Assembly: GCF_006345805.1 (NCBI RefSeq)
Contig: NC_043001.1
Coordinates: 38,874,001-38,938,000, forward strand
DNA length: 64,000 nucleotides
Origin: Octopus sinensis
Lineage: Eukaryota
Direction of reading: 5' to 3'
The position numbers and the translations under genes were made by a program. Numbering within the stretch: the stretch's first letter is position 1; each line of letters opens with the position of its first letter. Under the pieces are notes generated by a model. That model was not told the DNA's origin. It ran no database searches and worked only from the letters and a program-made list of their open reading frames with translations. Of the stretch, positions 13,371-48,496 are shown one piece after another.

Positions 13371-14109
13371 CCAACCTCACCAGACTGAGAAGCTGTTTTG
13401 CACACTTTAGACCCCTTCCATTGATTCTGCCCCATCTAGCCTTATGATTCTACAGTTAAAAGGGGGATGTAACTAATTCTTTTTTGCCTTTCTTTTTCCA
13501 TTTTTTTCACCAAACATAGGCATACTTTAAAACTTGACAAGATAATATCTTCAGTATATAAAACTATATACTGCGTACATTAAACAACATACATATATAT
13601 ATGATATATATATATACAAGCATTAAACCAATAACATAGTTATCAAACTTTCTTTCTTCTGGCGTTGACCTTTTTAACGTTTATTTTCTTTAAACTATAT
13701 ATGTTTGTGTGTGCAAGTGTGTGTGAGTGTAGACTCACTATATTTTTTAGATTGAAACCAGGATTATAGGAACTGAAACTTGGGACAGTGGAAATACCAT
13801 GAATGATGAAGAGTTACAGCATATGGGATGGGTGTTAAAGAAGAGTGGGCCATCGGGAGGACTTTTCACTGCAACTGTATTAACATAACTGCCTATTTTG
13901 TTCTTATATGAAGGCAATTCCTAGCAAGTACGCAAGTGATACATGTGAACTGGTAAGATTGATCTTTCTCACTTAGAAGGTTGAACAGCTGGGTATGAGA
14001 CAAAGGGACAGGAATCAGATGTACAAAGCTGCTAGTTCCGTACCTGATAGAATCAGTGTATACAATTATCTGTCTCTATTGACAAGTAACATCTTATTCA
14101 ACTGCCAAC

Positions 14110-15500
14110 TGTTCTTTTGGAAATATTTTCATGAGAAATTTGATATTTTAAATTTTATCAAAAATATCTGAGCAGCTTAGGTGAGTGTTTATTTTAGTAA
14201 TTAGAAAACCACTGACCTCTTTTCTGACCACATATGCACTGGTGCAGAAGTACTATGTAGATAGTGAATGAATACTACAGCACTAAGATTTTCTCTTAGC
14301 AATGAGCAAATAATTTGGCCACTATTTTACATGCATAAAGTTTTGTGTTGCCCAAACTTCTGCTTTAGAAGCTCAAAGACTTTGCAATAACAGCCACATC
14401 AAATAACTGACCAATGTTTACTACTTGGTTTTCAATCCTTTGATTTTAACTGTAGACTGTTGAACAATTGGCCAAAATATCTACCCACAACAGTCTTCTG
14501 CTGGTTTAAAGTTCTCTTTCCATAGGTTAGGTATGGGAGACATCTTTCATAAAACCTTTTACACTCTTTCTTCACTTTTCCAATGCTTTTCCTAATTTTT
14601 TGTCCTGGTTTCTCTGCAAAACCTTTCCATTTTGAGGTACAAATTCAGAGTTTTTTCTCCTGCTACTTAGTATTGTACTCCTGTTTCTTGAAAAAATTGA
14701 GCTATCCATATTCAAACTAAAAACATATCTTTCTGTTTTGCCAGTCTCAGCACAATTCTGCTAGAACAATTGTGAAGAATTATTTCAACTGCTGATATAT
14801 TACCATGTGGTCTCATGTTTTTGTATCCCACACTGGCAAAGTCACAAAATTCTTTTAGAGACATTAAATGACCTGTATATATAAGAAAATATTTTAATAT
14901 TTTCAGGAGTTATTTGATATTAATTGGTATGAAGTTGTACACAATATGTACACCTCAGCTTCAGTTAATGCCAATATAGCACCTTCCAAATTTTGCATAA
15001 AAATTTACAGGTTCCCATTTTGTCAGGACTAGCAACAACTTTGGCTAAAATGTGTGGAGATCATCTTTCATATAGTCAGATGTTTTGAAATTCAAGTCAT
15101 GTGAAACAGTATGAAAAGCAAAATTAACTTCTTCAGCAGCCACTTTTGGTGAGATACTTGCAAGACAAATTAAATCAAACAAGCTTTGCAGTGTTTCTGC
15201 CTTTCTCATGGAAAATGTATGTAATAAAAGGCCTAATTTTAACAATTATAAATACTTGAACATGTCATAGTTCAGAGAATGCCATTGTTTGTCTCAACAC
15301 AAGAATCTCAGTCACTAGTTAGTTTCTCCAGGGACAATCTGGTTTTCCAATGGTCATCTGTTTCCTTCATTTTTGAAACAGAGGGAACAATTCTAAATAT
15401 TTGGACTTTTTCCGTGTGTATGAATGAAGTACAAGATTTTAATTTCAAGTTACAACAGGGTTCCTGCTACAAGTGTTTCATTATGGTTTAGTAAGACTAA
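14110..15500 (-). mobile_element. Highly decayed hAT transposase
   Basis: KVAAEEVNFAFHTVSHDLNF, LKEFCDFASVGYK, KECKRFYERCLPYL and STSAPV..MWSEKR fragments in the expected order. Confidence 0.65.
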
Positions 15501-15908
15501 TTAGCACCAATGTCTTGCACCTTTCTGTCAAATAATAAAGATAGTAACAAATAAATATTTCAAGATTATTAAAAACTGGGACAGACTTTCAAATTGGCTG
15601 GAAAGCCAGAACAAGGAGTTAAAATAGGATAATTTAGGTCAAACCAACAAATAAATATTGTCTACAAATATATGAAGTACTTCATCATCATTTTAATGTC
15701 CACATTTCCATGCTAACATGAGTGAGAAAGAATTCACCGAGACAGATTTTCTCTGATTGGATTGCACTCTTTTCCCCAACCTTCCCTTGATTCCAAGAAT
15801 GTTGTTTTCTGCATGACAAGACATGTTTTTATGGATGATTGGAAATGAGCAACACCAAATGTATGATGGTGACACATTCATGAGTAATGTGCAAGGTTGA
15901 GACAAGGA

Positions 15909-15950
<42 letters not shown>

Positions 15951-16444
15951 TCACAGTATATAGTTTATATATCCCTGCACATTTTTTCTCTCTCCATTTT
16001 CTTCCTCTCAATATTTTCTGTCAAAGAGCATGAGCTTGAAACATCAAAGACTTTTCCATTCTTCCTGAGCGTTAAATTCATACATCTACTTGTTGTTCCC
16101 TCAGCTGTCTTCCTCTTTTGTTTTCTGTAAATTTGAAATATTATATATCCATCGTGGCCAATCTTACAAATTGGTTTTGCACTGGGGTTCAGTAGGATGT
16201 CAGATAAAAGCCTGACTCTTCTAAGTTGGCAGATATGTAAGAAAATATGGTGACTGTTTTTCAAATTTTCTTCCATACCAAACAACTCTGAAGAGTACAG
16301 GGTAACATAATCAATATACTGCATATTTTTTGTGATTTGTGGTGGGTTTGTGTAAGTAGGTAGATAGAGAAACAGATAAACTGACACACACAAACAGGCA
16401 GATAGTTAAACACATTTACACATATATATATATATCCTCACCAC

Positions 16445-16872
16445 TATCCTCACTGCCCTTGCCAGAGCATATTCTGTGGACCATGCATCTGCTCTCTCCC
16501 CCTGCACCCGCCCCACTGTCTCCCGTTTCTCCTCACCTACCACCCCACCATCCTACCTCTCCAACGCACCATTCTCCAAGCCTTCCGGTGACTCCAGTCT
16601 GACCCCTCCACTTCGCACATCTTCCCTAACTGACCCCTCCCCTCCTTCAAATGAGCCCACAACCTACAAGACCTCTTGGTCCACAGCTTCTTCCCTAACT
16701 CAACCCCCCAACCCAGCTCATTACCCTGCTCCCGCCCATGCCCTTACCTCTCCAACACAACGCTCCTCACCAGCACCCATCATCAACACTATCATATCAC
16801 CGACTCCTTCACCTGCATTTCTACCAATTTCTACTGTATCTCCTGCTCTCTCTGCCCTTCTCTATATATCTG
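16445..16872 (+). mobile_element. Penelope-like (Poseidon-type) fragment ending in the GIY-YIG domain
   Basis: PFLLTYHPTILPLQRTILQAF..LQSDPSTSHIFP..HNLQDLLVHS, then HITDSFTCISTNFYCISCSLCPSLYI. Confidence 0.8.
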
Positions 16873-17850
16873 CTAACCTAGAAAAAGCCTTTGATTTATT
16901 CTCTCATACTGCGATAGAGTGGTCTCTGGGGAAGTTAGAGGTAGATGAACAGCTGGTGAAAGCCATACAAGTTATGTACAGGGGAGCTATCAGTAAAGTG
17001 AGAGTTAACCAGGAGATCAGCAATGGATTTAGAGTATAGGTAAGAGTTCACCAGAGCTTGGTTTTCAGTCCCCTCATATTTCATATATTGCACCCCCAGG
17101 CCATAGTAGAGACTGGATCTCCCTGGGGAACTACTATAGGCTAATGGTCTCATTTCTCAGAGCAAGAATATAGACAAGACACTATTCCCTTCAGGTAAAT
17201 GATCCTGCCTGATATGCAAGAAAAGTATAGGCAGGAATTCCATACAGTGCACCCAGACAGGTTATAGACACACAAGTGGAGCAGTGGAATCACAGGATGG
17301 CTAATGGGGAAGGCTTGTATGTGGAAGATACACAGTAGCCATAAACACTAAGAGTATATATCCCTGAAGGTAGTAGATAGTTTTTATAAATTAGATGACC
17401 TAATTAGCAGTGGTGGAGGCTGTTCTGAAAATACAGTTGCTAGAACAATAGGATGAATAAAGTGCAGAGAAATACTGGTTCTGTTTGCAACAAAAGGTTG
17501 CTCTCTCTCTCTCTCTCTCTCTCCCTGAATGAAAAGTAGATTGTTTAATGCTTCACTATGAACAACAATGTTAAATGGTGGTGAGATATGGACTCTGAAT
17601 ATAGAGGACATGCAAAGACTACAGAGGAATGAAACTAGTATGCTCCATTGGATGTGCAATGTCAGTTTTCATGTACAGCAAATTGGCATACAAAGAATCA
17701 AATGTAACATGTAAAAATGAAGACTGCACTGGTTTGGTTATGTGATGTATATGGATGAGAACAGTTGCATAAAGAAATGCTGGTCATTTAAAGTGGATGG
17801 AACTTGTTGAAAAGGGTGACATAGGAAGACAAAGAACTGAATGATTGGTG
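16873..17850 (+). mobile_element. RTE LINE reverse-transcriptase fragment, decayed
   Basis: NLEKAFD..WSLGKLEVDEQLVKAIQVMYRGAISKVRV..VRVHQSLVFSPLIF, followed by more RTE-like sequence. Confidence 0.85.
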
Positions 17851-20134
17851 ATTCATTATACTTGAGAAGATCCATCCATCACAGCAAATATAAGGTCCTA
17901 AGATCACCTTGATTATGCTTGCTTGTGCTGGGCCCTGTCAAACATCCTCACATCTCAGCTCCCCAACATCAATCCCTCCTTGATATTATAACATCCCCTA
18001 ACACTATGTGTTACCAATTATGGCCTTCCCTCAGCTTCCATCTTTCCTTCTAATTATTGTCTCTTTCAACAAGCATCCGTTCCCCAGCTCTTCTCTGCCA
18101 TAAATCAATAAATAAGGAGTTAATAGCTTTTAAAGTTTGCAAATTTGGAGTAATTTTAGCCAATCAAAAGCCAAAGATAAATATAGGAGCCTGTTTCCAT
18201 AGTAACCAGCCAAGCTGTTAACTCATGCAGTCATTTTCTGTTTATTAAATGGTAGTCATAAGACGTGCTAAAAATAATAACTAAATAGGCCTTAAATCAT
18301 GCACCCTATTTTTCTTTCCATTTTTGCATAATTGTATGAATTCCTGTGTGTAGAATACAAATTCACAAAAAGTTTCTGAAAATTCCAAAATATAAAAAAT
18401 TTATGAGGGTTCTTATGGTGTGCATAAAGCAGAATTTCGTCAATATTTCATTTGTTTACAGTTGACATCACGTGCTGGAACATACAAAATTATAGCTTCC
18501 AAATTCTGTTTTATGACTGGATAAAAATGATGAAACTTTAAACTTCTATAACTTTTTTTTTTTTAATTTCTGGAAAAGGTGAATTAGCCCCTGAGATTCA
18601 GTGTGGAGAATTGCATCAATACACCAAATTTTAAAATTTTCAATAAACTTTAAAATTACCATAGAAAAGACTCCAGCTCAATCTGAATGTATACCTCACA
18701 GCACTATCATAAATCTACAAACTGTAAATAAAGTAAAATCTATTAACACATCTGTTTCAAGATGCACAATTTGTACAAGCAGTATCAGCAAATGTCAAAG
18801 CACACATACCATCACCACCATCAAAACTCCACCCCCACTAGGTAATAATTAAACTTTACAGCTTCCACATACATAACCAGGAATCCTAAAATCTGTCAGT
18901 ATTCTCAACGTGACATTGTAGAAAAATGGAGAGCTTCTGATGTTGTTTTTCATTCTAGTATGCTACAAGTGTTGATGCTAACACAACTTATTCTGTCTTC
19001 ACCTGTGTCTATAGCATCAAATGAGCAAACATCCAGCACATTCACCATTTGAAGAACTGGATCTGTACCACAATGACACAGCACCATGTAGCACATAGTG
19101 CCATAATGCATAATAAAAATGTATTGCACATCCTTGTAGAAAGTTTCATTACAAAAACGAGTGCACGCAGAAAAGTTTTTGGAATGCTTTGAGACACTTT
19201 TCCATGTGCACGAATGTGGGATGAAATTTTCATAGGCTGACTATAAAAGAGTGATGCAAGAGCTGTGAAATCTTGCTTGCATTAATTTCAATTCTCCTAT
19301 TTAATAAATGCATTGTTTCTTTCCAGATATAATGATATCTGACTGTCCGTAGAAAACTTCAAAAGTAACTATTAGCAACTTCTCTGGAAAACAGACAAAA
19401 TTTGGCATCGTGCTGTAATCAAGTACCTGCAGGGAAAGGTTTTAGCACTCAAGGACATTCATGCCGACGTTATTCATGTAGACATGATACATTAAGGGTT
19501 GACACTCCTGCCTTATTGTCAGTACAAAAGTGGCAGCTAAATTTAGCAAGGGAAGAGATAGTCTTCAGAAAAATCATGGTTTGGATGTCCTGCAGCTACT
19601 GCTGCCACCACGGAAAACATTGTGTTCATCACATAATGATGAATGATTGGCGATTGACTATAACTTAAATACCCAGTGCTATTAGCATATCCTGTCTGAG
19701 AGTTGAGACTATTCTGCAAAATGAACATAGCATGATGAAGGTTTCTGCTCGCTGAGTGTCACATGTTCTGACACCTGATCAAAAATGCACCAGGTTGATC
19801 ACATGAGAACATCTGACACTGAGGTGGATCCAGCATGTTTCCTTGATTGTTTCCTAACCCAGGATGTTTTTGGGTTCATCACATTGAGCCAGAGATAAGA
19901 AGCAATCCATGCAAGTGGAAAGAAACACCTCTCTTCACCTGCTCCACTGAAGGACAAGGTTGTTTCATCTACAGAGAAGGTGATGGCCCAGATTTTTTGG
20001 AATATAAAAGACATTGTGCTTATTGACTGTCTTCATAAGGGTCACACTTTCAATGGAGAGTGCTATGCCAACTTGCTAAGGCAGTTACGAAAGGCTACTA
20101 AGACCAAACGCCCAGGAAAACTGATGAAGAGGGC

Positions 20135-20375
20135 TGTTGTGCATTCTTTCATTCATGATGGGATGATAGACAACTTACTGAAGGCATTGTTATTGTTTTA
20201 CGTGTTTATTTTGCTTAACCTGTTTACAAGCTGTCAATATACCACGGAGTGATACACATTGTGCGCATCTGCCCTAGACGCAGTTCACACTGTTTACTAA
20301 CAAATTGTGCCAATAGTGGGGATGCACTCATACATACGCATACCTACGTATACACATAGATATGAATGTGTAACA
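20135..20375 (-). repeat. 3' LTR (241 bp), preceded on the minus strand by PPT aagaagggg (20376-20384)
   Basis: 21 substitutions and no indels versus 24714-24954, by manual alignment. Confidence 0.97.
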
Positions 20376-20779
20376 CCCCTTCTTGAAAAAAAAATAAAGG
20401 GGTCTTTGGCAGTGAAGAAAAAATATAAGTAATCTCCCTTACTCTAATGGATTGTCAGTGCAAGGGTGGCAATCCTGCAGCAGAAACCGTGAGATTATTC
20501 TGCCCAATCACGTGGATTTTAGCTTTGTAATCTAGCAGAATTAGTTAAATCCTTAAATCCTTAAAAATGTTTTAGCCCGAAGGCCGCAGCCATGCTGGGG
20601 CACCATTTTCTTTTTCTTTTTTCTCTTTAACGGTATCGAACCGGTGGTAAAATGTTAGATCTCCATCTGGTGTATCTTATGCTCCACACTGGTGTCTGAG
20701 GTGTGTTGTTGGGCTGCTGATGAGTGATTGGTGCCCATTGGGGTGATGATTCTGTAGGTGTTGTCACTGATGTGGTAGG

Positions 20780-23760
20780 TGTTGTACATGTTATCCTCGA
20801 CAGCTTTGGTGCTGGGCAGATGTGGCCCTGTTGTGTCTCAGCTGCCTACCAGGTTCCATTTCTATAATATACGATCTTGGAGTTTCAGCTCTACTGACAA
20901 CTTGTGCTGGGATCCATGTTTTGGTTATAGGATCTTGAGTATGCACATGTTGTCCTCCAAGTATCTCAGGTAAGTATTGTGCATGTTTGTTGTAATATTT
21001 CTGTGATTGTTCTTGAGTGGCTACTAGCTTTGCCCTTGTCTCTTCCTGGTCAATAGGAGGTTGGATCTTGGTTGGTAGGGTAGTTTTGTACTTCCTGCCA
21101 TTCAGCAATTCTGCTGGGGATTTCATGTCAGCTCTCAGTGGTGTCGCTCGTAGGGACAGAAGTACCAGGTGTGGGTCTTCCTTAGTCTCTCAGCATTTGA
21201 CTAGTGTTCTCTTCACTGTCTGCACTTGTCTTTCTATAAACTCATGACCTTTGGGGTAGTGTGGAGATGAGGTTGTAATATTGAACCCATACTCATCAGC
21301 TAGTGTTTTGAATTCTTGCGATGTGAACTGGGTTCCATTGTCACATATGATCTGCTCTAGTATTCCTTGCTCTGCTAGAACTCCTCGAGCCACTGTAGTT
21401 ATTGTTTTGGCTCTCAGGTCTATCACTTTTCTCACAAATGGAAATTTGAAGTAGTAGCAGATCATAATCAAATACCATTCTTGGCTCTCTGTGAACAGAT
21501 CTACTCCAATAGCTTGCCATGGCCTTCTTAGGATGTCACTGGGTATCATTTCCTCCTTTTGTTGTGAGTTTCTGTACTTTTGACAAATATGGCGTGTAGA
21601 AACTATCTTTTCTACGTCTTTGTACATGCCTACCCAATATACAGCTGACTTGGCTCGGAGCTTGCATTTTTCCATTCCTAGATGCTCTTGGTGGATCTTG
21701 TCAAGAATCTCTTTTTGCATTGATTTGGGTATAATTATTCAGGATACAGCCATCAGGATTCAATTCTCCACTGATATATCATCATGGATGGCCCAATATT
21801 AACGAATGAGGGGCTGCACCTGATGTCTCTTTTCTGGCCACCCCTGAATCACCATCTGAATAAGGAGCTGAAGTTCTTCCTCTCTGCTGGTCTCCTCTTT
21901 TATTTGTGCTAGCTTTGTGTTTGTTACATTTACCATGTGGTGGGCCTTTACGTTTAGTCCTTCCATCTCCTATTTATCATGTGAGGATGGTCTGGAAAGA
22001 GCATCTGCCAATATCAGGTCTTTTCCTGGCTTGTACCTGATATCGTAGTTGTACTTTTGGAGCCTCAACAGTAATCTTTGCAGTCTGACTGGTGCTTTCG
22101 TGAAGTTTTCTCTGTGTATTTGTTCTAGTGGGCGATTTTCTGATTCAATATTGAAATGTCTGCCATACAGGTATGTATGGAACATTTCACAGACATATAC
22201 TAATGCCAGGAGTTCGCTTTCAATATTTGCATACCTTGTCTCTGTGGGTGAGAGAGCTTTCGAGGCATATGCAATGGGTTTACCTTCCTGTATCAATGCT
22301 GTACCAACTCCTCTCATAGAAGCATCGACTTGGAGTGTTACTGGTTTGCGTCTGTCGTAGTACTGCAGAGTTTTCTCCTTACTGATAAACTTTTTGATTG
22401 CTTGGAAATCCTATGTGTGTGTGTGAAGCACACCAAACTCTACGTCATCTTTGTTTAGTTCTCGGAGATTTGCAGTGTGATCAGCCAGCTTGGGTATGAA
22501 GGCTCCCATGTAGTGGATGAGTCCCAGGAAGCTCCTGAGTTCCTTCTTATCTTTGGGTTCTTTGATGTCTCAGATGGCTTCCACTTTAGCGGGGCCTGGT
22601 TTCACGCCCTCTGCAGAGTATATAATTCCAAAGAATTTGCACTCCTTTGCTTTTATCACACGCTTATCTGCATTGAGTTTGATACCTGCTTGTCGGGTTT
22701 TCTCCATGGCTTCATGTAAATTGAAGTCATGTGTGATTTCATCCTTGCCATGCACTTGGATGTCGTCTGCTATGCCAAATGCTCCCTTGCTGCCTTGGTA
22801 GGTCTCATCTATTTGGCACTGGAAAAAATCTTGGCTCACCTTCAATCAAAATGGGAGTCGGTTGAATCGGTATCTGCCTTGCCTATCTTTACATTCCAGT
22901 ACCCATTACTGGCATCCAGTTTGCTGAATATCTTGGATCCAGCTAATGATGGTGTGATTTCTTCAAGGGTTGGAATTGGATGGTACTCTCTTTGTTCAGG
23001 TCCCTTGGGTCGAGGCATATCCGTAGGGTACCACTGGGTTTTTCTTTGATTACAATTGAATTCACCCAGTCTGTTGGTTGTGTCACTTTGGTGATTATTT
23101 CTCTTTTTTCCATTCTGTCCAACTCAGCCTTCAGCTTCTCTTTTAATTCTTGAGGAACGTGGCGAGGTGGGTGAACAATTGGTTTGGCATTGGGGTCGAT
23201 GTTATACGGTATCGACATTTCACCAAACACCCGACTGTATCATCAAAGCATTCTGGGTACATGCTTATCAGTTCTATATTTGTGATTAATGGTCGGTCTT
23301 TGATAGGCATATCTCTGTCAATCCTGCTTGGAGCTGCCTTCACTTCACCATTGATTGACACAATATTAAGCTTTTGACAGGTATTAAGTCCATTAATTGG
23401 TGGTCCTTCTGTTCTTGTGACATAAAAAGAACACTTGATTATTTTTCCTTTGTGTGTCCCTGTGATTGTTGTTTTGCCCAGTTGTGGAATCTTGGCACCT
23501 CCGTATGCAGTGAGGATTACATCACTTGGTGTGAGGATTCCTTCTTTGACTTTATCCTCTCATGTCATGTATTCTGGGAACATCTTTTTGTAGAGGTTGA
23601 CAGGCAAGATATCACTCTGGGCTCCAGTGTCAATCTTTAGTCTTAAGTCAATGTTTATTCGTTTCTTGCCTGACTTCTTTTGTATTTGTATCATTGTGTA
23701 TGCCTCATTTTTTTTTCTGGTTGTCATTTCCCATCTCATGCACATTTATTGTGCCGACAG
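20780..23760 (-). pseudogene. pol: Gypsy pol (protease, RT, RNase H, integrase) with stops and frameshifts
   Basis: LKIDTGAQSDILP (protease), LRICLDPRDLN and GIADDIQV (RT), GVGTALIQEGKPIAYASKAL (RNase H), HQEHLGMEKC..ICDNGTQF..FIERQVQTVK (integrase). Confidence 0.95.
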
Positions 23761-24604
23761 CCAAGAATTCCACCTCTGAGGTGTTTTGTTCCTGTTGTTG
23801 GGCATGTATATCTCTTTGTTTTCTATTTCCGCTCCTCTTCGAAAATTGGGGCTTGTATTTCTGAGATTTTGTTAGTCTACATTTTTCCCCAGTAGTTAGG
23901 TTTTCCACATGCTTTGCAGTGTGTACCGAATGCAGGACATTTCTTCTGGTCATTGAACTCATGCTCTGTACCACAGTACTGGCAGGTTCTCTGTTTGTAG
24001 GTATGTTTCGTTCTATGTCTAGATACAATTTCTACACTGCTACCTATTGTGTTTGTTTGTAAAGTGAGAACATTTGTTTGGTAGTAACTTCGAATGCTCT
24101 TGCAGTGTCTACTGCTTCTATTAACTGGAGAGCGTCCTTACCTATGAGGGATTTCTGAACTTCTTTATGAGTACACCCCCATATTAGTTGATCAACAATC
24201 CTTTCATTCTTGTCTTTGAATTTGCATTTCTCAGCAACATTCTTTAGTCTGGACAGGAAGTTGTCAATTGTTTCTTGTGGGTCTTGTTTCCAGCCCTGGA
24301 ATTCGTATCTATGAATTCTATGGTTTGATCTGGGCTCTAGGTGCTTTTCAAATTTCTCAAAAAGTGTGTCTGGGTTATTGCAATCTGATTCTGACATGTC
24401 CCAGCTATTGAATTGGTCTAGGCCCTTCTCTCTCGTCCATAAAAGGATGTAGTTTACCTTTTCATTGACAGTTGTACCTTTCAGGAAGCTTTTGAAAGCC
24501 AGTTGAGTTTTCTGTTTGAATTTCTTGAATGCTTCCACGATATCATCGGCGTCCCAGTTCATGGTTGGATGTAGATTCATCTGTACAGCGACGGGTGTCG
24601 CCAT
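23761..24604 (-). pseudogene. gag: Gypsy gag (capsid ORF 24044-24604 plus frameshifted zinc-knuckle region)
   Basis: 186-aa ORF MATPVAVQMNLHPTMNWD..ERIVDQLIWGC, typical of K02A2.6-like Gypsy gag. Confidence 0.85.
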
Positions 24605-24700
24605 TTTGGATCCTCGTGTGTGTGTGTCTGAAGACGAAGCGATATTCAGTTTATTAAATTTCTGGTTTGTTGTAAAGGCACAGTTTCCGATTAATTATTT

Positions 24701-24713
24701 ACCGCTGCCACCA
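24701..24713 (-). promoter_or_regulatory. Primer-binding site complementary to the tRNA-Leu 3' end
   Basis: TGGTGGCAGCGGT directly abuts the 5' LTR; it is complementary to the ACCGCUGCCA-CCA end of tRNA-Leu(UAG/AAG). Confidence 0.85.
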
Positions 24714-24954
24714 TGTTATGCATTCTTTCGTTCGTGATGGCATGATAGACAACTCACTGAAGGCATTGTTATTGTTTTACGTGTTTATTTTGCTTAAGCT
24801 GTTTACAAACTGTCAATATACAGCAGAGTGATACTCATTGAGCGCATCCACCCTAGATGTAGTTCACACTGTTTACTAACAAATAGTGCCAATAGTGGAG
24901 ATGCACTCATACATATGCATACCTTTGTATACACATAGATATGAATGTGTAACA
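24714..24954 (-). repeat. 5' LTR (241 bp)
   Basis: About 91% identical to 20135-20375; TG..CA termini. Confidence 0.97.
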
Positions 24955-25910
24955 AGGGCCATGTTTCATCAGGAGAATGCTCTAGCACTCAGGTCCTGTT
25001 CAGTCGAACCTCATAATAAAAAAATTATTATTATTATACTTTTGTTTTGGTATTAAGAATGAAAAAGTCTCTCTTGTTCGTAAAAAAGTTTGGACCTTGG
25101 TTTCCACACCCCAAGCAAATTTAGTTCCTGATCACTGGATGTGTGTCTGAGCTAATGTATGCATATACAGACTTGAGATGGATATATTTCTGTATGTATG
25201 TGTGTCACACACATCCGTCTGAAGACTGCATACACATCATAGCAGAGTATCTCTAATGTACATATATGCATGCGCCGCGCACAAACACAATTTATAACTT
25301 CTAGGTGGATGTAAACACTTCATATATACATATATATATACCAGCAGTATAACCCAGGCTTGCCTGGGATTAAGTTACGATTATTAAACTAATCAAGTTC
25401 TTTATTTCAAACCAAACTAAGTAATATAGACGTCAAATGTGGGCGAAATCAACTACTCTGACCTCAAAACCCTTTTTGTGGTCCGTGAAACGGAGTGGGG
25501 TGTGGTGGAAGCCTCGCAAATTGTACCCATTTATATTGTGTAATTCACTAACAAATTATTACTCACCTCTTTGTTTTTATGTTGTTAAATAAATAGATTG
25601 TCAACAAAACACTTTTTTACTTGGCATAAAATAAAAACAAAACTCTTTCGCACCCAAAGTAATGTGTGTGAGAGGGGAGAGAAAGATGAACGATTTAAAA
25701 TAAGGGGCTAAATGCAACAGTAACACCCCACCACCCTGCCCTGTCCCTAGCCATATTCAGATGGCTTTAGTCCCTTATGTTATCGAGCAGTTACTGTCTA
25801 TATCTCTTTTAGAGAATTATTATTGCTGTCGAACAGATTTTCGAAATCAGCAAATGTATTTTGCTTGAAAATCTATATATGAATATCCTGCAGAGTGAGA
25901 TTTCGTCAAG

Positions 25911-25984
25911 GAAGCGGAGGCCTACCACACGTTGATGATAGGCAATACACCTTGAAACCATGGTCCGTGTGTGGTTTCCGCTTC
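25911..25984 (+). ncRNA. Type I hammerhead ribozyme motif, copy 1
   Basis: gaagcgga..cacacg-TTGATGA-t agg caataca cct t-GAAA-ccatgg-TC|-cgtgtg..tccgcttc; predicted GUC cleavage after 25965. Non-canonical U3 and a U-U pair at 10.1/11.1. Confidence 0.8.
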
Positions 25985-26271
25985 ATCGGGGAATTATCTC
26001 CCTTTGCAGGTTAAAGGACACCGTGACGGTGTCGGGCCTATCTGGCGACGTCGATGTTCGCCTGGGGCTAAATGCAGCAGTAACACCCCCACCACCCTGC
26101 CCTGTCCCTAGCCATATTCAGATGGCTTTAGTCCCTTATGTTATCGAGCAGTTACTGTCTATATCTCTTTTAGAGAATTATTATTGCTGTCAAACAGATT
26201 TTCGAAATCAGCAAATGTATTTTGCTTGAAAATCTATATATGAATATCCTGCAGAGTGAGATTTCGTCGAG

Positions 26272-26345
26272 GAAGCGGAGGCCTACCACACGTTGACGAT
26301 AGGCAATACACCTTGAAACCATGGTCCGTGTGTGGTTTCCGCTTC
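26272..26345 (+). ncRNA. Type I hammerhead ribozyme motif, copy 2
   Basis: Identical to copy 1 except core TTGACGA (N7 position); predicted cleavage after 26326. Confidence 0.8.
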
Positions 26346-26980
26346 ATCGGGGAATTATCTCCCTTTGCAGGTTAAAGGACACCGTGACGGTGTCAGGCCT
26401 ATCTGGCGACGTCGATGTTCGCCTGGGGCTAAATGCAACAGTAACACCCCCACCACCCTGCCCTGTCCCTAGCCATATTCAGATGGCTTTAGTCCCTTAT
26501 GTTATCGAGCAGTTACTGTCTATATCTCTTTTAGAGAATTATTATTGCTATATTGTAATTGTTGTGTGAGAAAGTATATATACTATGAATGTAAAATATA
26601 GTGTCTTTCAAAAACAAAAAATTTTACTTTTTATTTTTTATGAACATCGTCACTTACTTTCTCTCTCTCCCTCTCTCACTTTGTCTTTCCCGTGAAACTC
26701 TCTGCTTCCTTCTTCCACTTTTCTTAATCTTATTTTTTTTGTTAGACGCCATCAAAAATGCTATGGCTGATATTTTTTATGGCTAAAAGCTAAGGTCGAA
26801 AACAGATTTTTACGCTATCCGCGGGTGGCTTGGGAAAAAATAAGTTGAAAAAACCCAGATAGGGTGTCGACAAATATCCACCTAAAATTTGAGCGACATG
26901 CGTGCTAATTTTTGGATGTGCATAAATTACAATCACGTACACACACATCATGCTTTTTATAGATATGATATATATATATA

Positions 26981-27823
26981 CTAGCAGAATTGCCCGGCGT
27001 TGCTCGGGGCTGAATTGCTTGAAAGTACTGTTAATGATTGCACTGAATTATGATGATTATTCAGGCAAACATTGATATAAGTTTACGGTGGGAGATAAGG
27101 ACTTAACGATCAAGCGTGTGCCATTGCATTGTTTTGGGGGAACCAAATTTCTGATGAGCATTATAGGGGCACCAACTTTAAGTTTGAGAAAGTGTGGTGG
27201 TAGTCCGGGGTGCTCAAAGAAATTGAGTACCTCTATTGGATAGTTGATGACGTCCCCTGTGTCAGGAGTTGTATCGATAGACTGATATACATAGACTTCC
27301 CCAGGAATGAGTTTTAGCATTTCATCATTAATATGGTGAACAGTTTTATTCCTCGGGGCCAGTATAGCCTTTTTGCCAATCCAATCCATATTCTGATAAT
27401 TAGCTTGTAGATCTGGGAACACTGCATCTCTGAGATCAGAAGGCGTCTTAACAATGGTACAAATGGAATCGATGGCAATATTACCATTTTCATCCCCTGG
27501 TATTTTGCCTTCGCCAAGTGCAAGGAGGGTGTGAGAAAATGCTGCTTATGTGATATTACGTCGCATATGAGCACGCATATTGGTGTGAAGTTTGAGAGTT
27601 ACTTCCCTTTATTAAAAAAAATATGCATTAAAATGGAAAAAATGATGGTAAATTATTTGTAAAATCATAGACTCATCGTAGACGCGCGCTAATACCCAGA
27701 AGGGCTCGATATGAATCACGACTATAAGATACCCGGTTTTGGTTAAACTGCATCGCAAAATGTGGGAGTAGTTAGGAATCTAAATCGGAGTAGACGGACA
27801 CACAACCTTTCTTTATATATAAA
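26981..27823 (-). mobile_element. Chimeric non-autonomous Helitron (family B 5' part, family A helicase fragment and 3' end)
   Basis: 26981-27597 matches 48584-49200; 27595-27823 matches 28930-29166; hairpin plus CTAG at 26981. Confidence 0.85.
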
Positions 27824-27824
27824 T

Positions 27825-28330
27825 ATTTTCGTCCTAAAAAACTTTGTATGGATTGAATGGTTACCTCTATGGAAATATATACACGCACATTATACATACA
27901 TGTGTGTATAGATGAATATATAAATACATTTAAATATCTATATACACTTTTGGGCGATCTTTCTGTTTCTTAGTGATAACTTTAGATCTTATTTTCGTCC
28001 TAAAAACTTTGTGCGGAGTGAATGGTTACGTCTATAGAAATATATACACACACGTTATACATACATGTGTGCATAGATGAATATATAAATACATTTATAT
28101 ATCTATATACACTTTTGGGCGATCTTTGTGCTACTTGTATATACTTTAGATGTTATATTCGTCCTAAAAACTTTGTATGGAGTGAAAGGTTACCTCTATG
28201 GAAATATATACACACACATTATACATACATCTGTGTATAGATGAATATATAAATACATTTAAATATCTATATGCACTTTTGGGCGATCTTTCTGCTACTT
28301 GGATATAGGTCTTATATTCGTCCTAAAAAA
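27825..28330. repeat. Tandem repeat, about 3 copies of a 159-166-bp unit
   Basis: gtcctaaaaa recurs at 27831, 27997, 28161 and 28320 with collinear downstream sequence. Confidence 0.9.
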
Positions 28331-28771
28331 ACTTTCCTGTCACACACTCACGCACACGCACACACACACACACACACACGCACCCTCACACACACACACA
28401 CGCACGTTAGCTTACAATTTTATTTATATATTTGCGTGTCTATGTGTGTAAAGAGGAAGTGGGAGGCAGAGTGAAAGAGTCACTCAGTACAGAAAGTGAA
28501 TTACTTTTGCTTTATTCATTGCACACTGTGAGTGTGCGTTTGCGTGTGCTGTATCCCATACTAAGAGAAGCATTTGACTCATACACCACAATGTGAGTTT
28601 TCTGTAAATTTTGCTTAATTGGGGTTGAAATTTTAAAAAGTGGACCTGGCAAAACCCGATGCATTCTACTCTTAAAAATGCTAGGTAAATTGTAATTGAA
28701 GAAATCCTATATTGTAGATTTCTATAACTGACAAAGGGAGGCAGATAAAATCTGCCTTTTATAATAAGAGA
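28330..28771 (-). mobile_element. Family C Helitron-like element
   Basis: 5' end TCTCTTATTATAAAAGGCAGATTTTATCTGCC at 28771. Confidence 0.65.
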
Positions 28772-29166
28772 CTAGCAGTATCGCCCGGCGTTGCTTGGGT
28801 TTGTAAGGGAAATAATTATATAAGCATTTTTAGAGATGTAAAGTATAATAGCCATCTCAATATGTCTAACCACAAAGGAGGAGGGGTGTTACTGTAGCTT
28901 TTTACGTTCTGAGATTTAATAATAAATTTTAGAGAGTTACTTCCTTTATATATGTCAAAAATGGATTAAAAATGGGAAAAATTGATGGTAAATTTTTTTT
29001 TAAATCGTAGACTCATCGTAGACACGCGCTAATACCCAGACGGTCTCGATATGAATCACGTCTATAAGATACCCGGTTTTGGTTAAACTGCACCGCAAAA
29101 TGTGGGAGTAGTTAGGAATCTAAATCGTAGGAGACAGACACACAACCTCACTTTTATATATAAAGA
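28772..29166 (-). mobile_element. Family B non-autonomous Helitron (395 bp)
   Basis: A|TCTTTATATATAAAAG at the 5' end; hairpin plus CTAG at the 3' end; homologous to 31929-32324. Confidence 0.9.
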
Positions 29167-29324
29167 TTTCCTCTATTTACATAATATTGAGGTCTCTTTC
29201 TTTCTTTTGTTATCTTACTGTTTTTACCAATATACATATATATATATAAATATATATATAGTTACAGAGATGTACTTGCATAGCAAGTGACTTGATCTGA
29301 GATCGTGTGCTGGAACGAAAACAG

Positions 29325-29582
29325 TTGCAGCGTTGAAGGTGTTTATAAGCCATTTAAGAAACACACAAAAACCGTTAGATTCACTTCAACATTTAAATTT
29401 AATTTGTCAAAATATTTTCGTCGCTTTGAGACCGCAACCTGTTAGCACGATATTTTTGTCAGTGAACAGGTCGCGGTCTCAAAGCGAGGAAATATTTTGG
29501 CAAATTAAATTTAAATGTTGAAGTGAATCTAACGGTTTTTGTGTGTTTCTTAAATGGCTTACAAACACCTTCCACGCTGCAA
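29325..29582. repeat. 258-bp palindrome (118-bp arms, 21-bp spacer), MITE-like
   Basis: 29325-29443 is the reverse complement of 29465-29582 with few mismatches. Confidence 0.95.
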
Positions 29583-29659
29583 TATATATATACACACATA
29601 TATATATATGTATATATGTATGTGTGTGTATATGTGTATGCATGTATGTGTGTGTGTGT

Positions 29660-29880
29660 GCGTGTCTGTGCTTGTGATTGTCCTCCACCACTGCTTGACA
29701 ACGAATGTTGGTTTGTTTACATCCCTGTCACCTAGTGGTTTGACAAAGGAAACAGATAGAATAAGTACAATGCTTACAAAAATAAAACTGGAGTTGATTC
29801 ATTAAACTACAATTCTTCAAGGCATTGCCCCAGCATGGCCACAGACCAATGGCTGGAAAAAGCAGAAGAATAAAAGAATA
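29660..29880 (+). repeat. SINE 3' part
   Basis: Homologous in reverse orientation to 39950-40160. Confidence 0.7.
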
Positions 29881-29945
29881 CATTCTCTGCTTTGGTCTTA
29901 TGTTCAAGGCATGAGAAAGCTTGAGTTTACATGAGAAGGCCTAAC

Positions 29946-30230
29946 AGACCTGGTAGAAACAGCAGCCAAATCTCCCTCAAATCACACCTTACTGTCTTAT
30001 GTATGTATATATATATGAGCCAATGAGGGGGACCTCTACATGGTAGCTAGACCTGGTAGAAATAGCAGTCAAATTTCCCCCAAATCACACCTTACTGTCT
30101 TATCTATGTATATATGTATGTATGAGCCTATGAGGGAGACCCCTACATGGCAGCTAGACATGGTAGAAATAGCAGCCAAATCTCCCTCAAATCACACCTT
30201 ACTGTCTTATGTATGTATATATATATATAT
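29946..30230 (+). repeat. Three tandem copies of a 103-107-bp unit
   Basis: agac(c/a)tggtagaaa at 29946, 30049 and 30156. Confidence 0.9.
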
Positions 30231-30424
30231 ACAAGCCACTACAGTTATTTAATGTAAAGTCTTCCTCAAATCACTCTCGCTATTTACTCTCTTCCAAGAA
30301 CATTTTCACTCACTCTTATCTCTTAGCTTCCCATACATTTTACTCATGTATCTATCAGCGTCATAGACAGAAACAAATATTACATCGCCATCGCATTCTA
30401 TTTCCTACCTGTCAACACACAGTG

Positions 30425-31022
30425 AATTAGTTTCACTTTATTCGTTGCACACTGTGTGTGTGCGTTTGCGTGTGCTGTAAACCAGACTAAGAAAAGCATT
30501 TGACATACACACCAGAATGTGAGTTTTCTGTAAATTTTGCTTAATTGGAGTTTAAATTTTAAAAACTGGACCTGGCATGACCCGATGCATTCTACTCTTA
30601 AAAATGCTAGGTAAATTGTAATTGAAGAAATCCTATATTGTAGATTTCTATAAGTGACAAAGGGAGGCAGATAAAATCTGCCTTTTATAATAAGAGATAC
30701 TGTATCTCTTATTATAAAAGGCAGATTTTATCTGCCTCCCTTTGTCAGTTATAGAAATCTACAATATAGGATTTCTTCAATTACAAGTTACCTAGCATTT
30801 TTAAGAGTAGAATGCATCGGGTCATGCCAGGTCCAGTTTTTAAAATTTCAACCCCAATTAAGCAAAATTTACAGAAAACTCACATTGTGGTGTATGAGTC
30901 AAATGCTTCTCTTAGTATGGGCTACAGCACTCGCACACACACACACAAAGGGAGCGATCTCATTCACTCACGCTATCACTTATTTCTACGACTTTCTCTT
31001 TGCAAGTAAAGTGAAACTAATT
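30425..31022. repeat. Head-to-head pair of family C ends forming a palindrome centred on 30701
   Basis: Centre gagatac-t-gtatctc; the inner 145-bp arms differ at about 2 sites. Confidence 0.95.
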
Positions 31023-31927
31023 CGATAAAACGAGAGAAGTGTACCTTAAAACACTACTAAAAAAAAAAACAGCAAACAGAAACAAATAAATACATAACGA
31101 TTTACTCCTCACACAATTTCTTCAATTAGAGTGTACCCATGATTTTTCAGAGTACTTCCAGTGGGTGATGCCATAAAAAATTTCTTTCAATTTTACCACC
31201 AATTAAGACAAAATTAGAGAAAACTCAATATTTTAACATTTCACTCCGAAAGCATTGATGTACATGTGTGCGTGCGTGAGTGTGTGTGTGTCATTCCTCA
31301 CACACACGCATACACATACATATATGAGAGCGGCAAACACAAACGTTTCAAACAACTACATACAAACACCTGTGTGTTTGTTATTAGTAAAAAAGGCGCC
31401 AAAACACAACTCACTTATCATTCCAACACATTTGCTATAACAATACAGAAAAGGTAAATTGGTTTTTATTTTACTCTGTATATATTTTATTATATAATAT
31501 TATATATAGATATATGTATATATAATTGCAGTATGAAACAGTGTTTATGTATAAACAGACGACACTTATATATAGTTATTAATAAATGTATGCATCCGTT
31601 TAACCCTTTCGTTACCAAACCGCCCGAATTTACCTATTCATATTTAAATGAGAATATCAGAGTAAATCTCTTTAGTACATTCGTGAAAACACGTATCATA
31701 CTTCGTAAAGAGTTCAACTACAGTTTTGTACAAAAATCGAAGTGTAATTTTAATTCCGTGAATTATGGGAGATTTTTTTCCGAAATTTGTTCCTATTGTG
31801 TTTTCAAAATTTGTAATTCTGACAAAAAATGGATACGAATTTCATTATATCAAGCAGCGAGTCAGAATTCGAAGGATTTTCTACTGAAGACCTTCATAAA
31901 TCTAACTCTATGACTGAAAAAAAAAGC
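30705..31927 (+). mobile_element. Family C Helitron-like element, plus strand
   Basis: Starts TCTCTTATTATAAAAGGCAG; the interior (31080-31460) is the reverse complement of blocks in 7770-8450. Confidence 0.6.
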
Positions 31928-31928
31928 A

Positions 31929-32324
31929 TCTTTATATAAGAGTGAAGTTGTGTGTCTGTCTCCTACGATTTAGATTCGTAACTACTCCCACATTTTGCGG
32001 TGCAGTTTAACCAAAAGCGTGTATCTTATAGTCGTGATTAATATCGAGCCCTTCTGGGTATTAGCGCGCGTCTACGATGAGTCTACGATTTAAAAAAAAT
32101 TTACCATCATATTTTTCCATTTTAATGCATTTTTTTCGCTTTTATATAAGGGAAGTAACTCTCTAAAAATATCTACGATGTGTCAACGATTTAAAAAAAA
32201 ATTTACCTTAATTTTTTTTCAATTTTTAATGCATTTTTTTGCTATTTTTTGGCTATAACTCTCTAAAAATGCTTATATAGTTATTTCCCTTACAAACCCG
32301 AGCAACGCCGGGCGATACTGCTAG
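31929..32324 (+). mobile_element. Family B non-autonomous Helitron (396 bp)
   Basis: A|TCtttatataagag...cccgagcaacgccggg-cgatactg-CTAG|T. Confidence 0.92.
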
Positions 32325-33203
32325 TTGTATATATGGTGTACCTACACAATTGTGCCCCACTACCGATTTATTTCCTCATAACTTACTTTTTCGAATGAAA
32401 TGCTTTACAATTGGAATTCAGATGGTGTGGATTTCGATTATATCGAAACTTGTCGCGAAAAAGGTTTTCCGAGTGTCGGGAGAGCAGTTTCGGAAAATTT
32501 ATACGAGTTGGCTTTGTTTCTACCTAACATTCAGTAAAATAGATTTTCATTTAGGAAATTTTCTATAAATACCTTTCAAATAGTGTATATTACGATTGTA
32601 TCGAATTTAAAATGAAAGAGTAATTGGCGGTCTCGCACGCATACACACTGATATAAATCACAAAATGAAACTCGAAAGTTCAATAAGATTTGTGATGTTT
32701 GTCATTATAAATTGGGAGCAAGCCCACATCTTTTTACTTTCTTTTACATATTAAATTCCAATACAAACATAATCTACACTATCTGAATGGTGTTTATAGA
32801 AAATTTCATTTTAAAAAAATGCGCAGTTTCCTGAAAACAAAAGAGACTTTTGTAAATTTTCGGAAACTCCCCTCCCTACCTTCAGGAAATTTTTTCCTAT
32901 AACTAATGCCGATATAACTAGAATCTGCACCATCTGAAGTATATTATAACATTTCATTAAAAGATATCAATTTTTCAGGACGTGACGAACCCCTGTACAG
33001 GAACCCCTGTACAATAATTTAATAGTCTTATGCACACATATCTGCACAGGAGAATTAAAAATTACTGCCGATTTTAGCAGTTTTGTAACTTCTTGCGGAA
33101 CCCTGGTTGAAAACCACTGGTCTAGCATAACAGTATGTTTTGCTGAGAATTAATCCACTTTTTTGACAGCAAGAGGTAAGTTTGTCTGAATTTTATCCAT
33201 TAC

Positions 33204-33879: not shown

Positions 33880-34530
33880 TGTTATTTTTTTTTTCCTTGT
33901 GAAAATTCCGGGGAAGGGGGTTACCCCCCCTTTCCGGAGCAATTCCGGACCAAAATATGGGATTTGCAGCATATTAGGAGGTCAGGGTACTTGATTCCAC
34001 GCAAAAAATCTGATTTTTTTTTTCTTGTGAAAATTCCGGGGGTGGGGGTGTTACCCCCCCTTTCCGGACCAAAATATGGGATTTGCAGCATATTAGGAGG
34101 TCAGGGTACTTGATTCCACGCTAGAAATCTGATTTTTTTTTTTCCTTGTGAAAATTCCGGGGAAGGGGGTTACCCCCCCTTTCCGGAGCAATTCCGGACC
34201 AAAATATGGGATTTGCAGCATATTAGGAGGTCAGGGTACTTGATTCCACGCAAAAAATCTGATTTTTTTTTTCTTGTGAAAATTCCGGGGGTGGGGGTGT
34301 TACCCCCCCTTTCCGGACCAAAATATGGGATTTGCAGCATATTAGGAGGTCAGGGTACTTGATTCCACGCTAGAAATCTGATTTTTTTTTTCCTTGTGAA
34401 AATTCCGGGGGGGGGTAATACCCCCCCCCCCCTTTCCGGAGGAATTCCGGACCAAAATATGGGATTTGCAGCATATTAGGAGGTCAGGGTATTTGATTCC
34501 ACGCAAAAAATCCGAGTTTTTTTTTTTTTT
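33880..34530. repeat. Minisatellite with ABABA higher-order structure (128+121-bp dimer)
   Basis: gaaaattccg at 33901, 34029, 34150, 34278 and 34398; A units carry agcaattccgg and B units lack it. Confidence 0.95.
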
Positions 34531-40160: not shown

Positions 40161-40991
40161 CACACATCCTGCTGCACTTCCAACATCATCTTCTTCTGTC
40201 TGTCTTTCACTCTGACTCTAACTCTCCTTTCTTTTTCTACTGGTGTAGCCAAGTATGGTAAGACATCTCTCTATCTCTCTATTACACTTTAACCTCTCAA
40301 CTGGCACAATGCTTCTTTGCTTACTCCCAGCCAAGAGGTTTTTGTCTTGCATGTTACTTTGCAATCCAATGTAAAGTGGTTAGAATTAGGAAGGACGTCC
40401 AGGCATAGAAATCTTGCCAAAGCAGACAATGGATCCTGATGTAGTTCTCCAGCTTGCCATTTCCTGTCAAACCATCTATTCCATGCTAGCAGGAATATAG
40501 ATGTTAAAACATGATGACATTGATGATGATGATGGTGCTTGCATTCATGCAGATGTCTGAATGTATATATATGTATGTATAAATATATATTTTTGGCTTA
40601 TACCTAAATACTGCTTGGTGCTAATATTACTGTAACTTTCATGACCTTGGTGGTCTACTGGCGCACATCAGTAATTGTTGTTGACTGTGTTTTAGTTAAA
40701 GGTCTGTCCAGAGTTGTCTCTCTTTGGTATTTCACATTGATAATGGCTAGAAGCTAAAAACATCCATGTCTGAGAATCTGACAGGTGACAGCACTGGATA
40801 GATATGGTGTTTTTACACCTTTTTTTACAGTAAGAGAGAATTTTTCTCTCTGGTAACTGCTCTGAATTTGCCTTTTGTATTTGAAATATGTCACAAACAT
40901 AAATTTAGCTTATACCTAAACTGCTTGGCACAGATACTACAGTAATACATACACATACACACACACACACACATATATTGTGTGATACAAA

Positions 40992-41378
40992 CAAAAGTTG
41001 ATATTTTTTTAATGCAGTGTTATCATTTGAACAGCGGAAGTAATGGGTAAATACCCTTAAAAGGTGGAAAAAGTTGTTGACAAACAGCCATGGGACTTGA
41101 ATCCACATCCCCCAAGACTCCAGCTGAGTGATTTGCCATTAAGTTAAACTGCCTGCTGACAAATTCATCTGCCGATTTAGATGCTAAATAACTTATTGAA
41201 CAACCACGCATGTTGCTTTTATTAGAAGTGTCAAAATGTGCATTGTACAATACAAATAAGATGTTGATATTTTTTCAAACAAAGTTTGTTGACAACTTTT
41301 TTCGCCTTGTAAAGCTATTTACCCATTATCTCTGTTGTTCTGACAGCAATACTGCAATAAAAAAACATCAGCTTCTTG
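40992..41378. repeat. Diverged inverted repeat (about 95-bp arms) around a tRNA-like head
   Basis: 40992-41085 versus 41284-41378; the ORF track shows homologous peptides on opposite strands. Confidence 0.8.
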
Positions 41379-42335: not shown

Positions 42336-42411
42336 GTAGACATGGCTGTGCGGTTAAGAAGCTTGCTTTGCAACCATGTGGTTTGAGGTTCAGTCCCACT
42401 GAGTGGCACCA
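42336..42411 (+). repeat. tRNA-derived SINE head
   Basis: A-box-like tggctgtgcggt and B-box-like ggttcagtccc. Confidence 0.7.
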
Positions 42412-42630
42412 TCTTTCTTTGTTTTCACATTTTGACTTCTTTTCAGATGGCAAGTTACCAATAACCTTTGTTACAACATTTTTTGAAATAGTTTGTGTAA
42501 ATAATCAATATGTTTACTTAACTGAGAAATGTGTGGAAAAATAAAATCAACTGATTCACTATTAATTCAATTCTGAATTTGATCTGCAAGAATTTCAAGA
42601 ACTTTTACCTATATACATATATACATGCAC

Positions 42631-46433: not shown

Positions 46434-46484
46434 ACATGCACACACATACACACACATACATTCATGTATTACTACTGGCACTTA

Positions 46485-48450: not shown

Positions 48451-48464
48451 ACATGCATATATAC

Positions 48465-48496
<32 letters not shown>

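Follow-up and report, generated by a model that had tools for sequence, protein, structure and literature searches.

In animals, small circular RNAs with ribozymes arise naturally by way of retrozymes, for which Penelope-like elements are considered the mobilising agents. The non-long-terminal-repeat (non-LTR) retrozymes consist of tandem units of 150-450 bp with a GC content below 50%, and they have neither long terminal repeats (LTRs) nor a primer-binding site or a polypurine tract (PMC7229834). The type-I hammerhead ribozymes (HHRs) of metazoans have a helix I of 6 bp, a helix II of 4 bp and a helix III of 1-2 bp with a small palindromic loop; they perform poorly alone and are active as dimers in tandem repeats (PMC4209133). 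In a 2026 preprint, the pseudo-LTRs of Penelope-like elements are argued to be the origin of animal retrozymes. We analysed a stretch of 64,000 nucleotides of the Octopus sinensis genome (RefSeq assembly GCF_006345805.1, contig NC_043001.1, positions 38,874,001 to 38,938,000 of the forward strand), hereafter called the window, in which positions 25704-26549 hold a short tandem array with a hammerhead-like motif in its unit. This array is probably the insertion of a non-autonomous retroelement of the non-LTR retrozyme type, with a variant hammerhead core.

A preliminary description of the window had placed a 361-nt tandem array at 25704-26549 (+), which was borne out by Tandem Repeats Finder and by the alignment of the units: the array measures 846 bp, with a period of 361, 2.3 copies (2.35 units) and 98% matches, and units 1 and 2 differ at 6 positions. 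The motif elements listed in that description (helix I, core, helix II, GAAA, helix III and the GUC site) were all found at the positions given there. On the plus strand, the HHR domain of copy 1 (25911-25984) comprises a distal helix, an internal loop, helix I, the core, helix II, GAAA, helix III and C17. Helix I, of 6 bp, is formed by CACACG (25926-25931) and CGTGTG (25966-25971), the catalytic core reads TTGATGA (25932-25938), and helix II (25939-25953) contains U10.1, AGG and CCT around the loop CAATACA, and U11.1; GAAA (25954-25957) is followed by the 8-nt palindrome of helix III, ACCATGGT (25957-25964; RNA form ACCAUGGU). Copy 2 (26272-26345, +) equals copy 1 at +361 except that N7 is C (TTGACGA in the DNA, UUGACGA in the RNA), and this was rightly described as the sole difference within the motif. 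The distal helix announced there as 8 bp does exist, but its length is 12 bp, with GAAGCGGAGGCC (25911-25922) facing GGTTTCCGCTTC (25973-25984), two G.U pairs included; it is separated from helix I by a UAC/U internal loop. Cuts after 25965 and 26326 had been proposed to bound an exact 361-nt monomer, and the coordinates proved correct: the self-cleavage sites predicted from the hammerhead consensus and a descriptor scan lie after C17 of GUC in copy 1 (25965/25966, +) and after C17 of copy 2 (26326/26327, +), and the predicted monomer between them (25966-26326, +) has 361 nt and a GC content of 46.5%.

The type-I topology is present, with a three-way junction in which helices II and III are loop-closed and helix I is open. 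Compared with the core consensus C3 U4 G5 A6 N7 G8 A9, position 3 is U, and U4, G5, A6, G8 and A9 are kept. G12 A13 A14, the A15.1-U16.1 pair and H17 are all present (U16.1 at 25964 and C17 at 25965), in copy 2 and in a second family locus, L007, as well. The G10.1-C11.1 pair, which is highly conserved in hammerheads but not absolute, is replaced by U.U in the window copies and by G.U in L007. Loop 2 (CAAUACA) and the UAC bulge that lies 6 bp from the core, candidate partners of a tertiary contact between loop 2 and helix I, resemble those of the Schistosoma-derived N79 (GUAC ... CAAAUA), the loop being CAAACA in L007.

A relaxed HHR descriptor, which accepts Y3 and any nucleotides at 10.1/11.1, matched on the plus strand of the window the two array sites and no others. 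Its chance rate, taken from 150 dinucleotide shuffles of the window on both strands, was 0.053 matches per 64-kb window and 0.013 with a helix I of at least 6 bp, these rates leaving out the distal helix and the tandem context. Exact-pattern HHR scans of metagenome and viral contigs gave 0 matches. We also built a covariance model, R1, from the HHRs of four validated retrozymes only (alignment A2), namely coral Amil224, mussel Mg353 and axolotl Ax353 and Ax330, for which self-cleavage has been demonstrated by experiment (Supplementary Table 2, PMC7229834). The whole window was searched on both strands with filters off and after a short calibration, so that the E-values are rough. Copy 1 ranked first (19.7 bits, E = 0.0019) and copy 2 third (17.0 bits, E = 0.012), and in the alignment all 13 model pairs are standard except 10.1/11.1. 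The other matches above 16 bits in the window are hammerhead-like relics, and obvious junk did not exceed 12.5 bits across about 340 kb (the window and 277 kb of further octopus DNA).

A homologous locus of Octopus vulgaris (L003; OX597818.1:28,404,506-28,428,498) is without the array. Across 12.2 kb it is collinear with window positions 13589-25703 at 95.7% identity; the match starts again at window position 26549, with 91.7% identity over 26549-26980, and the junction is closed. At the left insertion junction (25694-25703) the window reads ...TTTAAAATAA then GGGGCTAAATGC, where L003 reads ...TTTAAAATAA-AT-ATATTGTAATTG..., and at the right one (26550-26565) it reads ...TTATTATTGCT then ATATTGTAATTG. 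In a longer reading of the junctions, L003 has ...GATTTAAAATAA-AT-ATATTGTAATTG... and the window has ...GATTTAAAATAA followed by GGGGCT...TTATTATTGCT and then by ATATTGTAATTG.... Two nucleotides (AT) of the empty site are lost in the filled site, and the comparison of the two sites revealed no poly(A) at the array junctions. Neither a remnant of the unit nor a founder was found at the empty site of L003; the array therefore did not expand in place. The 846-bp 2.35-mer was inserted as one piece, and this conclusion holds for L003 as orthologue or paralogue alike. The inserted sequence is the array alone (25704-26549), without LTR, primer-binding site or polypurine tract, and, counted from the cleavage site, it starts at monomer position 99, includes the two HHRs and stops at monomer position 223. 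Three other accounts of the insertion were rejected. A target-site duplication made of the look-alike GTAATGTGTGTGAGA... strings on both sides is not significant (P about 0.05-0.07), and the empty site shows none; the neighbouring LTR element at 20135-24954 is a separate element, also present in L003; and for a Helitron the target is A-T-like, but the ends are not TC...CTRR.

Two more loci of the family were found in a search sample of 277 kb of further octopus DNA, reached via neighbouring transposon genes. L007 (OX597814.1) carries two head-to-head arrays within a (TA)n microsatellite, with 84-88% identity to the window unit: array 1 extends on the minus strand from 19075 to 18435 (monomer positions 298-361, 1-361 and 6-223) and array 2 on the plus strand from 19089 to 19460 (monomer positions 166-361 and 1-179). 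Its three HHRs read CAUACG UUGACGA G AGG CAAACA CCU U GAAA CCUGGG UC CGUAUG. L004 (OX597838.1) is a relic with 69-74% identity, in which a gap of about 38 nt deletes the 5' half of the HHR, and it is adjoined by an inverted partial copy. The family is thus dispersed on at least three chromosomes. U3 occurs in 5/5 family HHR copies (two in the window and three in L007), which makes U3.G8 a family trait and not a private defect; because it is common to all of them, U3 is older than the split of the two lineages. It did not prevent the family from transposing afterwards: the lineages are about 15% apart, and the window insertion took place more recently than the ~4% divergence between its flanks and L003 would indicate for the two sites. 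Three of the four arrays end at one unit position (...ATTATTGCT), the shared 3' end reading ...TTATTATTGCT in the window and in the minus-strand array of L007 and ...TTAATTATGCC in L004; the 5' ends differ, and the ends of the arrays never coincide with the predicted cleavage site.

We then compared the five family copies (alignment A6) over the 74-column HHR domain, in which helices I, II and III and the distal helix make 25 pairs. These are 97.5% paired in the alignment, vs 37-54% when the partners are slid. Two pairs have changed on both sides, one in helix I, from C-G to U-A, and one in the distal helix, from G.U to U-A, and single-sided compatible changes are seen in three; the centre of helix III passes from AU to UG between the lineages, its self-duplex being retained via two G.U pairs. 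The 11 substitutions of the domain break 0/24 standard pairs and touch 0/12 core positions. When 11 substitutions were placed at random, the probability of no broken pair was 0.002, and both conditions were satisfied in 0/50,000 trials. Selection has thus kept the HHR fold intact between the two family lineages. With four monomers, RNAalifold gave 83 pairs, of which 4 are compensatory and none broken, by a method that favours consistent pairs by construction.

The circular monomer is predicted to fold with an energy of -120.9 kcal/mol (z = -5.5 vs 200 dinucleotide shuffles), lower than that of any of the 43 segments of 361 nt taken from the window as controls. The monomer of L007 (-123.3 kcal/mol) is likewise predicted to form a long rod closed by helix I. 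In the mechanism that we propose, a multimeric transcript would be cut by the HHRs after GUC into 361-nt RNAs with 5'-OH and 2',3'-cyclic phosphate ends, following the pathway described for retrozymes (PMC7229834); two motifs would probably pair through the 8-nt palindromic helix III and act as a dimer. The monomer might then be circularised by the host tRNA ligase and copied over more than one turn by a reverse transcriptase that an autonomous element supplies, most probably one of the Penelope-like type, the multimeric cDNA being finally integrated into AT/TA-rich DNA. The shared 3' end, the variable 5' ends, the array ends lying off the cleavage site and the head-to-head partners agree with target-primed reverse transcription of a template that has no ends at the cleavage site. 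The first two of these, together with the adjacent inverted 5'-truncated copies and the TA-rich targets that lack a discernible duplication, fit such a process driven by a Penelope-like element.

In comparison with the metazoan non-LTR retrozymes (PMC7229834; newt satellite 2, Schistosoma Sm-alpha), the octopus array has the same kind of tandem unit, with 361 nt, a GC content of 46.5% and one type-I HHR per unit, the 6-bp helix I followed by an internal loop and a distal helix, and the short palindromic helix III. It shares with them LTR-free dispersed multimeric insertions and a highly paired predicted circular monomer. It differs by the core, UUGANGA (U3.G8) in 5/5 family copies vs CUGANGA, by its cephalopod host and by the single 3' end in 3/4 arrays, and the octopus circles are predicted only. 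The palindrome ACCAUGGU has its counterparts in those of mussel (ACGCGCGU), axolotl (ACACGUGU) and coral (ACAGUACUGU). The axolotl ribozyme HHR_Amex2 (Ax353), which reads CUGAUGA U GCC CACUA GGC U GAAA CACGUG UA, shows weak cleavage as a monomer (22% in 1 h) and is much more efficient in dimeric constructs (PMC7229834). This ribozyme, of the retrozyme Rtz_353, resembles the octopus one by U.U at the base of a 3-bp helix II, an 8-nt palindromic helix III (ACACGUGU vs ACCAUGGU) and a unit of about 350-360 nt, but it has C3 and a vertebrate host, and there is no homology to the octopus unit beyond the motif.

The HHRs of Penelope-like elements (PMC4209133) share the type-I topology, the palindromic helix III region and the proposed action as dimers; they are of a minimal form, whereas in the octopus array helix III is complete and helix I is long. 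In contrast with the Penelope-like pseudo-LTRs, the octopus motif lacks an additional nucleotide between 9 and 10.1 and an adjoining reverse-transcriptase/GIY-YIG gene. Penelope-like insertions occur as tandem and inverted copies at (TA)n targets, often without discernible target-site duplications (PMC8557442), and the octopus family likewise shows tandem and inverted copies and TA-rich targets. Plant LTR retrozymes are also non-autonomous elements with a hammerhead-cut and then circularised RNA, which is predicted in octopus; they carry type-III HHRs in LTRs, a primer-binding site and a polypurine tract, they are flanked by 4-bp target-site duplications, and their units measure 600-1000 nt with a GC content above 55%; none of these traits is found in the octopus array.

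Several results weigh against the retrozyme reading. U3 replaces the near-invariant C3, and we found in the literature no activity data for a plain U3.G8 core, the published natural variant being U3-A8. Helix II is weak, with 3 bp and U.U, and the N79-like UAC bulge becomes UGC in L007. The covariation comes from two lineages only and thus represents one pairwise comparison, and the conservation of the core is not significant by itself (P = 0.06 for 0/12 core positions). Beyond the HHR domain the pairs of the monomer are not spared, with 22 broken vs 23.9 +/- 2.9 expected on a single-sequence fold (P = 0.31); a structural constraint across the whole monomer was rejected as unsupported, the HHR domain alone passing this kind of test. 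No target-site duplication exists at the array junctions when the filled site is compared with the empty site of L003, and no Penelope-like reverse-transcriptase gene was seen adjoining any family copy. In the 89-nt domain, the monomeric HHR fold is less stable than the minimum-energy fold by 7.9 kcal/mol. The palindrome of helix III alone is predicted to form a duplex of -11.2 kcal/mol, and the two results agree with the dimeric action reported for the type-I class. Finally, Rfam at the gathering score gave no family anywhere in the window, and its hammerhead families, even at E <= 10, matched neither 25600-26700 nor the L007 copies. This search with the Rfam hammerhead models had been suggested in the preliminary description and is here a test of low power: Rfam also misses, even at E <= 10, a canonical HHR at 60.6 kb of the window and five identical CUGAUGA HHRs of another octopus locus, L005. 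The negative result carries little weight because canonical octopus HHRs are missed as well, and we dropped it as a decisive argument; the Rfam models are blind to the class of HHRs whose palindromic helix III is very short and whose loop 2 is often long.

The view of a retrozyme-like array with which the preliminary description had started is supported by the R1 matches, the covariation, the empty site, the dispersed family and the stable predicted circular monomer. It was also proposed there that the lack of any covariance-model match and of covariation would speak against this view; R1 matches both copies, and compensatory changes occur in L007. Its two caveats, U3 and the U-U pair at 10.1/11.1, concern real deviations, but the U.U pair has an active precedent in axolotl and U3 is family-wide, in 5/5 copies.

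A fossil retrozyme is an unlikely but serious alternative, in which the U3 core and the weak helix II would be catalytically dead, and the copies would have spread or been duplicated as uncleaved linear multimers, the fold surviving either because the copies are recent or through recognition of the structure by a reverse transcriptase. U3 and a non-G-C 10.1/11.1 in every copy agree with this, as do insertions that exceed one unit with ends off the cleavage site, the 3' end common to 3/4 arrays, as expected of a linear RNA with a fixed 3' terminus, and the further core-defective HHR relics that are common in the octopus genome. However, transposition continued after U3 arose, given lineages about 15% apart and an insertion younger than ~4%; the substitutions avoid 24/24 standard pairs and 12/12 core positions, unlike decay, and the U.G wobble retains a 3-8 pair known to tolerate replacement. 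The same common 3' end with variable 5' ends could also be produced by a generic short retroposon, mobilised by elements of the long interspersed element (LINE) or Penelope-like type and made tandem through template switching or repeated priming, in which the HHR-like fold would be without a role. The inverted partner copies in L007 and L004, the AT/TA-rich targets and the LINE-type reverse-transcriptase fragments in the window would suit it, but poly(A) and target-site duplications, typical of LINE-mediated insertions, are absent, the constraint lies in the HHR domain and by a similar test not in the rest of the unit, and every peripheral feature agrees with validated retrozymes. We regard this explanation as improbable. 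An ordinary local minisatellite with a chance hammerhead-like string is more improbable by far. With only 2.3 copies, no Rfam match and relaxed descriptors that give chance matches in large genomes, it could be envisaged, but no founder unit stands at the homologous empty site, the unit and the motif recur on another chromosome with compensatory changes, and the chance rate is 0.013-0.053 per window even before the 12-bp distal helix is counted.

Within the favoured reading of a retrozyme insertion, the activity of the U3.G8 core is a separate question. C3 and G8 pair, and the covariant U3-A8 is natural and active, first seen in Penelope-like HHRs (PMC4209133); U3 together with UGACGA is mentioned only for saltern variants, which also carry an insertion. 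Both known active cores occur in octopus, C3-G8 in the window (60676-60601) and in L005, and U3-A8 in L002 (7117-7162). It is conceivable, and we propose it tentatively with the balance somewhat against it, that the U3.G8 HHR is catalytically competent; it would then bridge the C3-G8 and U3-A8 cores as a natural intermediate proficient in transposition. If true, octopus would carry active core-variant retrozymes overlooked by CUGANGA searches and Rfam, and the 3' end common to 3/4 arrays would mark the start site of reverse transcription on the circular RNA; cleavage by U3.G8 would make it a natural wobble intermediate between the two other cores. The published retrozyme pipelines require CUGANGA (PMC7229834) and, because of this, would skip the octopus family. 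Surveys based on CUGANGA and on Rfam thus undercount elements with such a non-consensus core (U3.G8, with G.U or U.U at 10.1/11.1).

Retrozymes of this kind were already known; what is new is the cephalopod host, the family-wide U3 core, the pair of filled and empty sites and the 3' end common to 3/4 arrays. A literature search gave no report linking octopus or cephalopods with hammerhead retrozymes, and the octopus array widens the host range of these elements to include a cephalopod. The pair of sites shows the insertion of a multimer. The common 3' end, the variable 5' ends, the head-to-head arrays and the TA-rich targets represent testable features of retrozyme reverse transcription and integration.

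The window is dense in transposons, its long open reading frames (ORFs) including gypsy-like, hAT, Helitron-like helicase and LINE fragments; no Penelope-type reverse-transcriptase/GIY-YIG gene was found among them. A gypsy-type LTR retrotransposon lies on the minus strand at 20135-24954, with 241-bp LTRs (20135-20375 and 24714-24954) that are 91% identical; its gag ORF spans 24044-24604, and a fragment of integrase occupies 21190-21720. A hAT-type ORF at 43333-45474 has 99-100% identity to Octopus vulgaris proteins. Within the array, an 89-aa ORF (25960-26229, +) starts with an ATG within helix III and spans most of the unit; it had no homologue among 5.8 billion predicted proteins, a result uninformative on RNA expression, and it is probably fortuitous. 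Two HHR-free tandem arrays occur at 27824-28329 (164-bp unit, 3.1 copies) and 33884-34526 (249-bp unit, 2.6 copies). A 40-nt motif, (TA)n-ACTAGCAGAATTGCCCGGCGTTGCTCGGG, is present in three copies with 75-100% identity (25329-25368, 26969-27008 and 28760-28799), two of which flank the array some way off. The motif probably forms the head of a repeat like the short interspersed elements. The window aligns with chromosome OX597818.1 of O. vulgaris in two parts, 13589-32988 with ~28.41-28.42 Mb (95.7% identity) and 40166-55523 with 28.78-28.79 Mb (locus L002; 98-99%). L003 and L002 are 360 kb apart in the O. vulgaris reference and only ~15 kb apart in the window, which reflects either a structural difference between the assemblies or a segmental duplication.

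Other hammerheads were found in the octopus DNA. A single-copy canonical type-I HHR lies in the window at 60676-60601 (-) and reads UUUCGG CUGACGA GUACGAG (loop of ~47 nt) CUCGUAC GAAA CGAUCG UA CCGAGA, with a 7-bp helix II, the palindromic ACGAUCGU and A17; the chance rate of the strict descriptor is 0.007 per window. An HHR with the U3-A8 core occurs at 40731-40776 (+) of the window, with its orthologue at 7117-7162 of L002: UUCACA UUGAUAA UGGC UAGAA GCUA GAAA CAUCCAUG UC UGAGAA. In the O. vulgaris reference this HHR is intact (20.8 bits with R1), and the window copy has G12 changed to A (16.1 bits). A homology between this HHR at 40.7 kb and that of the array was considered and rejected, as there is none beyond the motif. 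In L008 (13069-13115), an HHR-like motif with C at position 4 reads UCUAGA CCGAUGA U GGG CAAAGA CCC U GAAA CAUGCGUG UC UCUAGA and scores 29.3 bits with R1; a copy in the window (5605-5651, -) has CCGACAA, scores 18.0 bits and looks decayed. These motifs are thus a second family with a non-consensus core in the octopus genome.

The arrays of L005 (5111-7359; O. vulgaris OX597837.1) are head to head, with a 490-nt unit in 2.9 and 1.7 copies that are 99% identical. They contain five identical canonical CUGAUGA HHRs with a loop-2 domain of ~58 nt and a quasi-palindromic helix III of 12 nt, and represent a second retrozyme-like family in octopus, unrelated to the window array. Short Penelope-type HHRs were seen in L007 (43440-43588), L010 (12771-12805) and L002 (5929-5970). 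No Penelope-like reverse-transcriptase genes were found near the minimal HHRs of L007 and L010. Those of L007 form an inverted pair ~70 nt apart (CCAC CUGAUGA A UGUC ... GACA U GAAA CAAUUG UA GUGG), and that of L002 is a relic with G12 changed to A (24.6 bits with R1). In the sampled octopus DNA, hammerhead-like motifs are present at roughly one per 25-30 kb.

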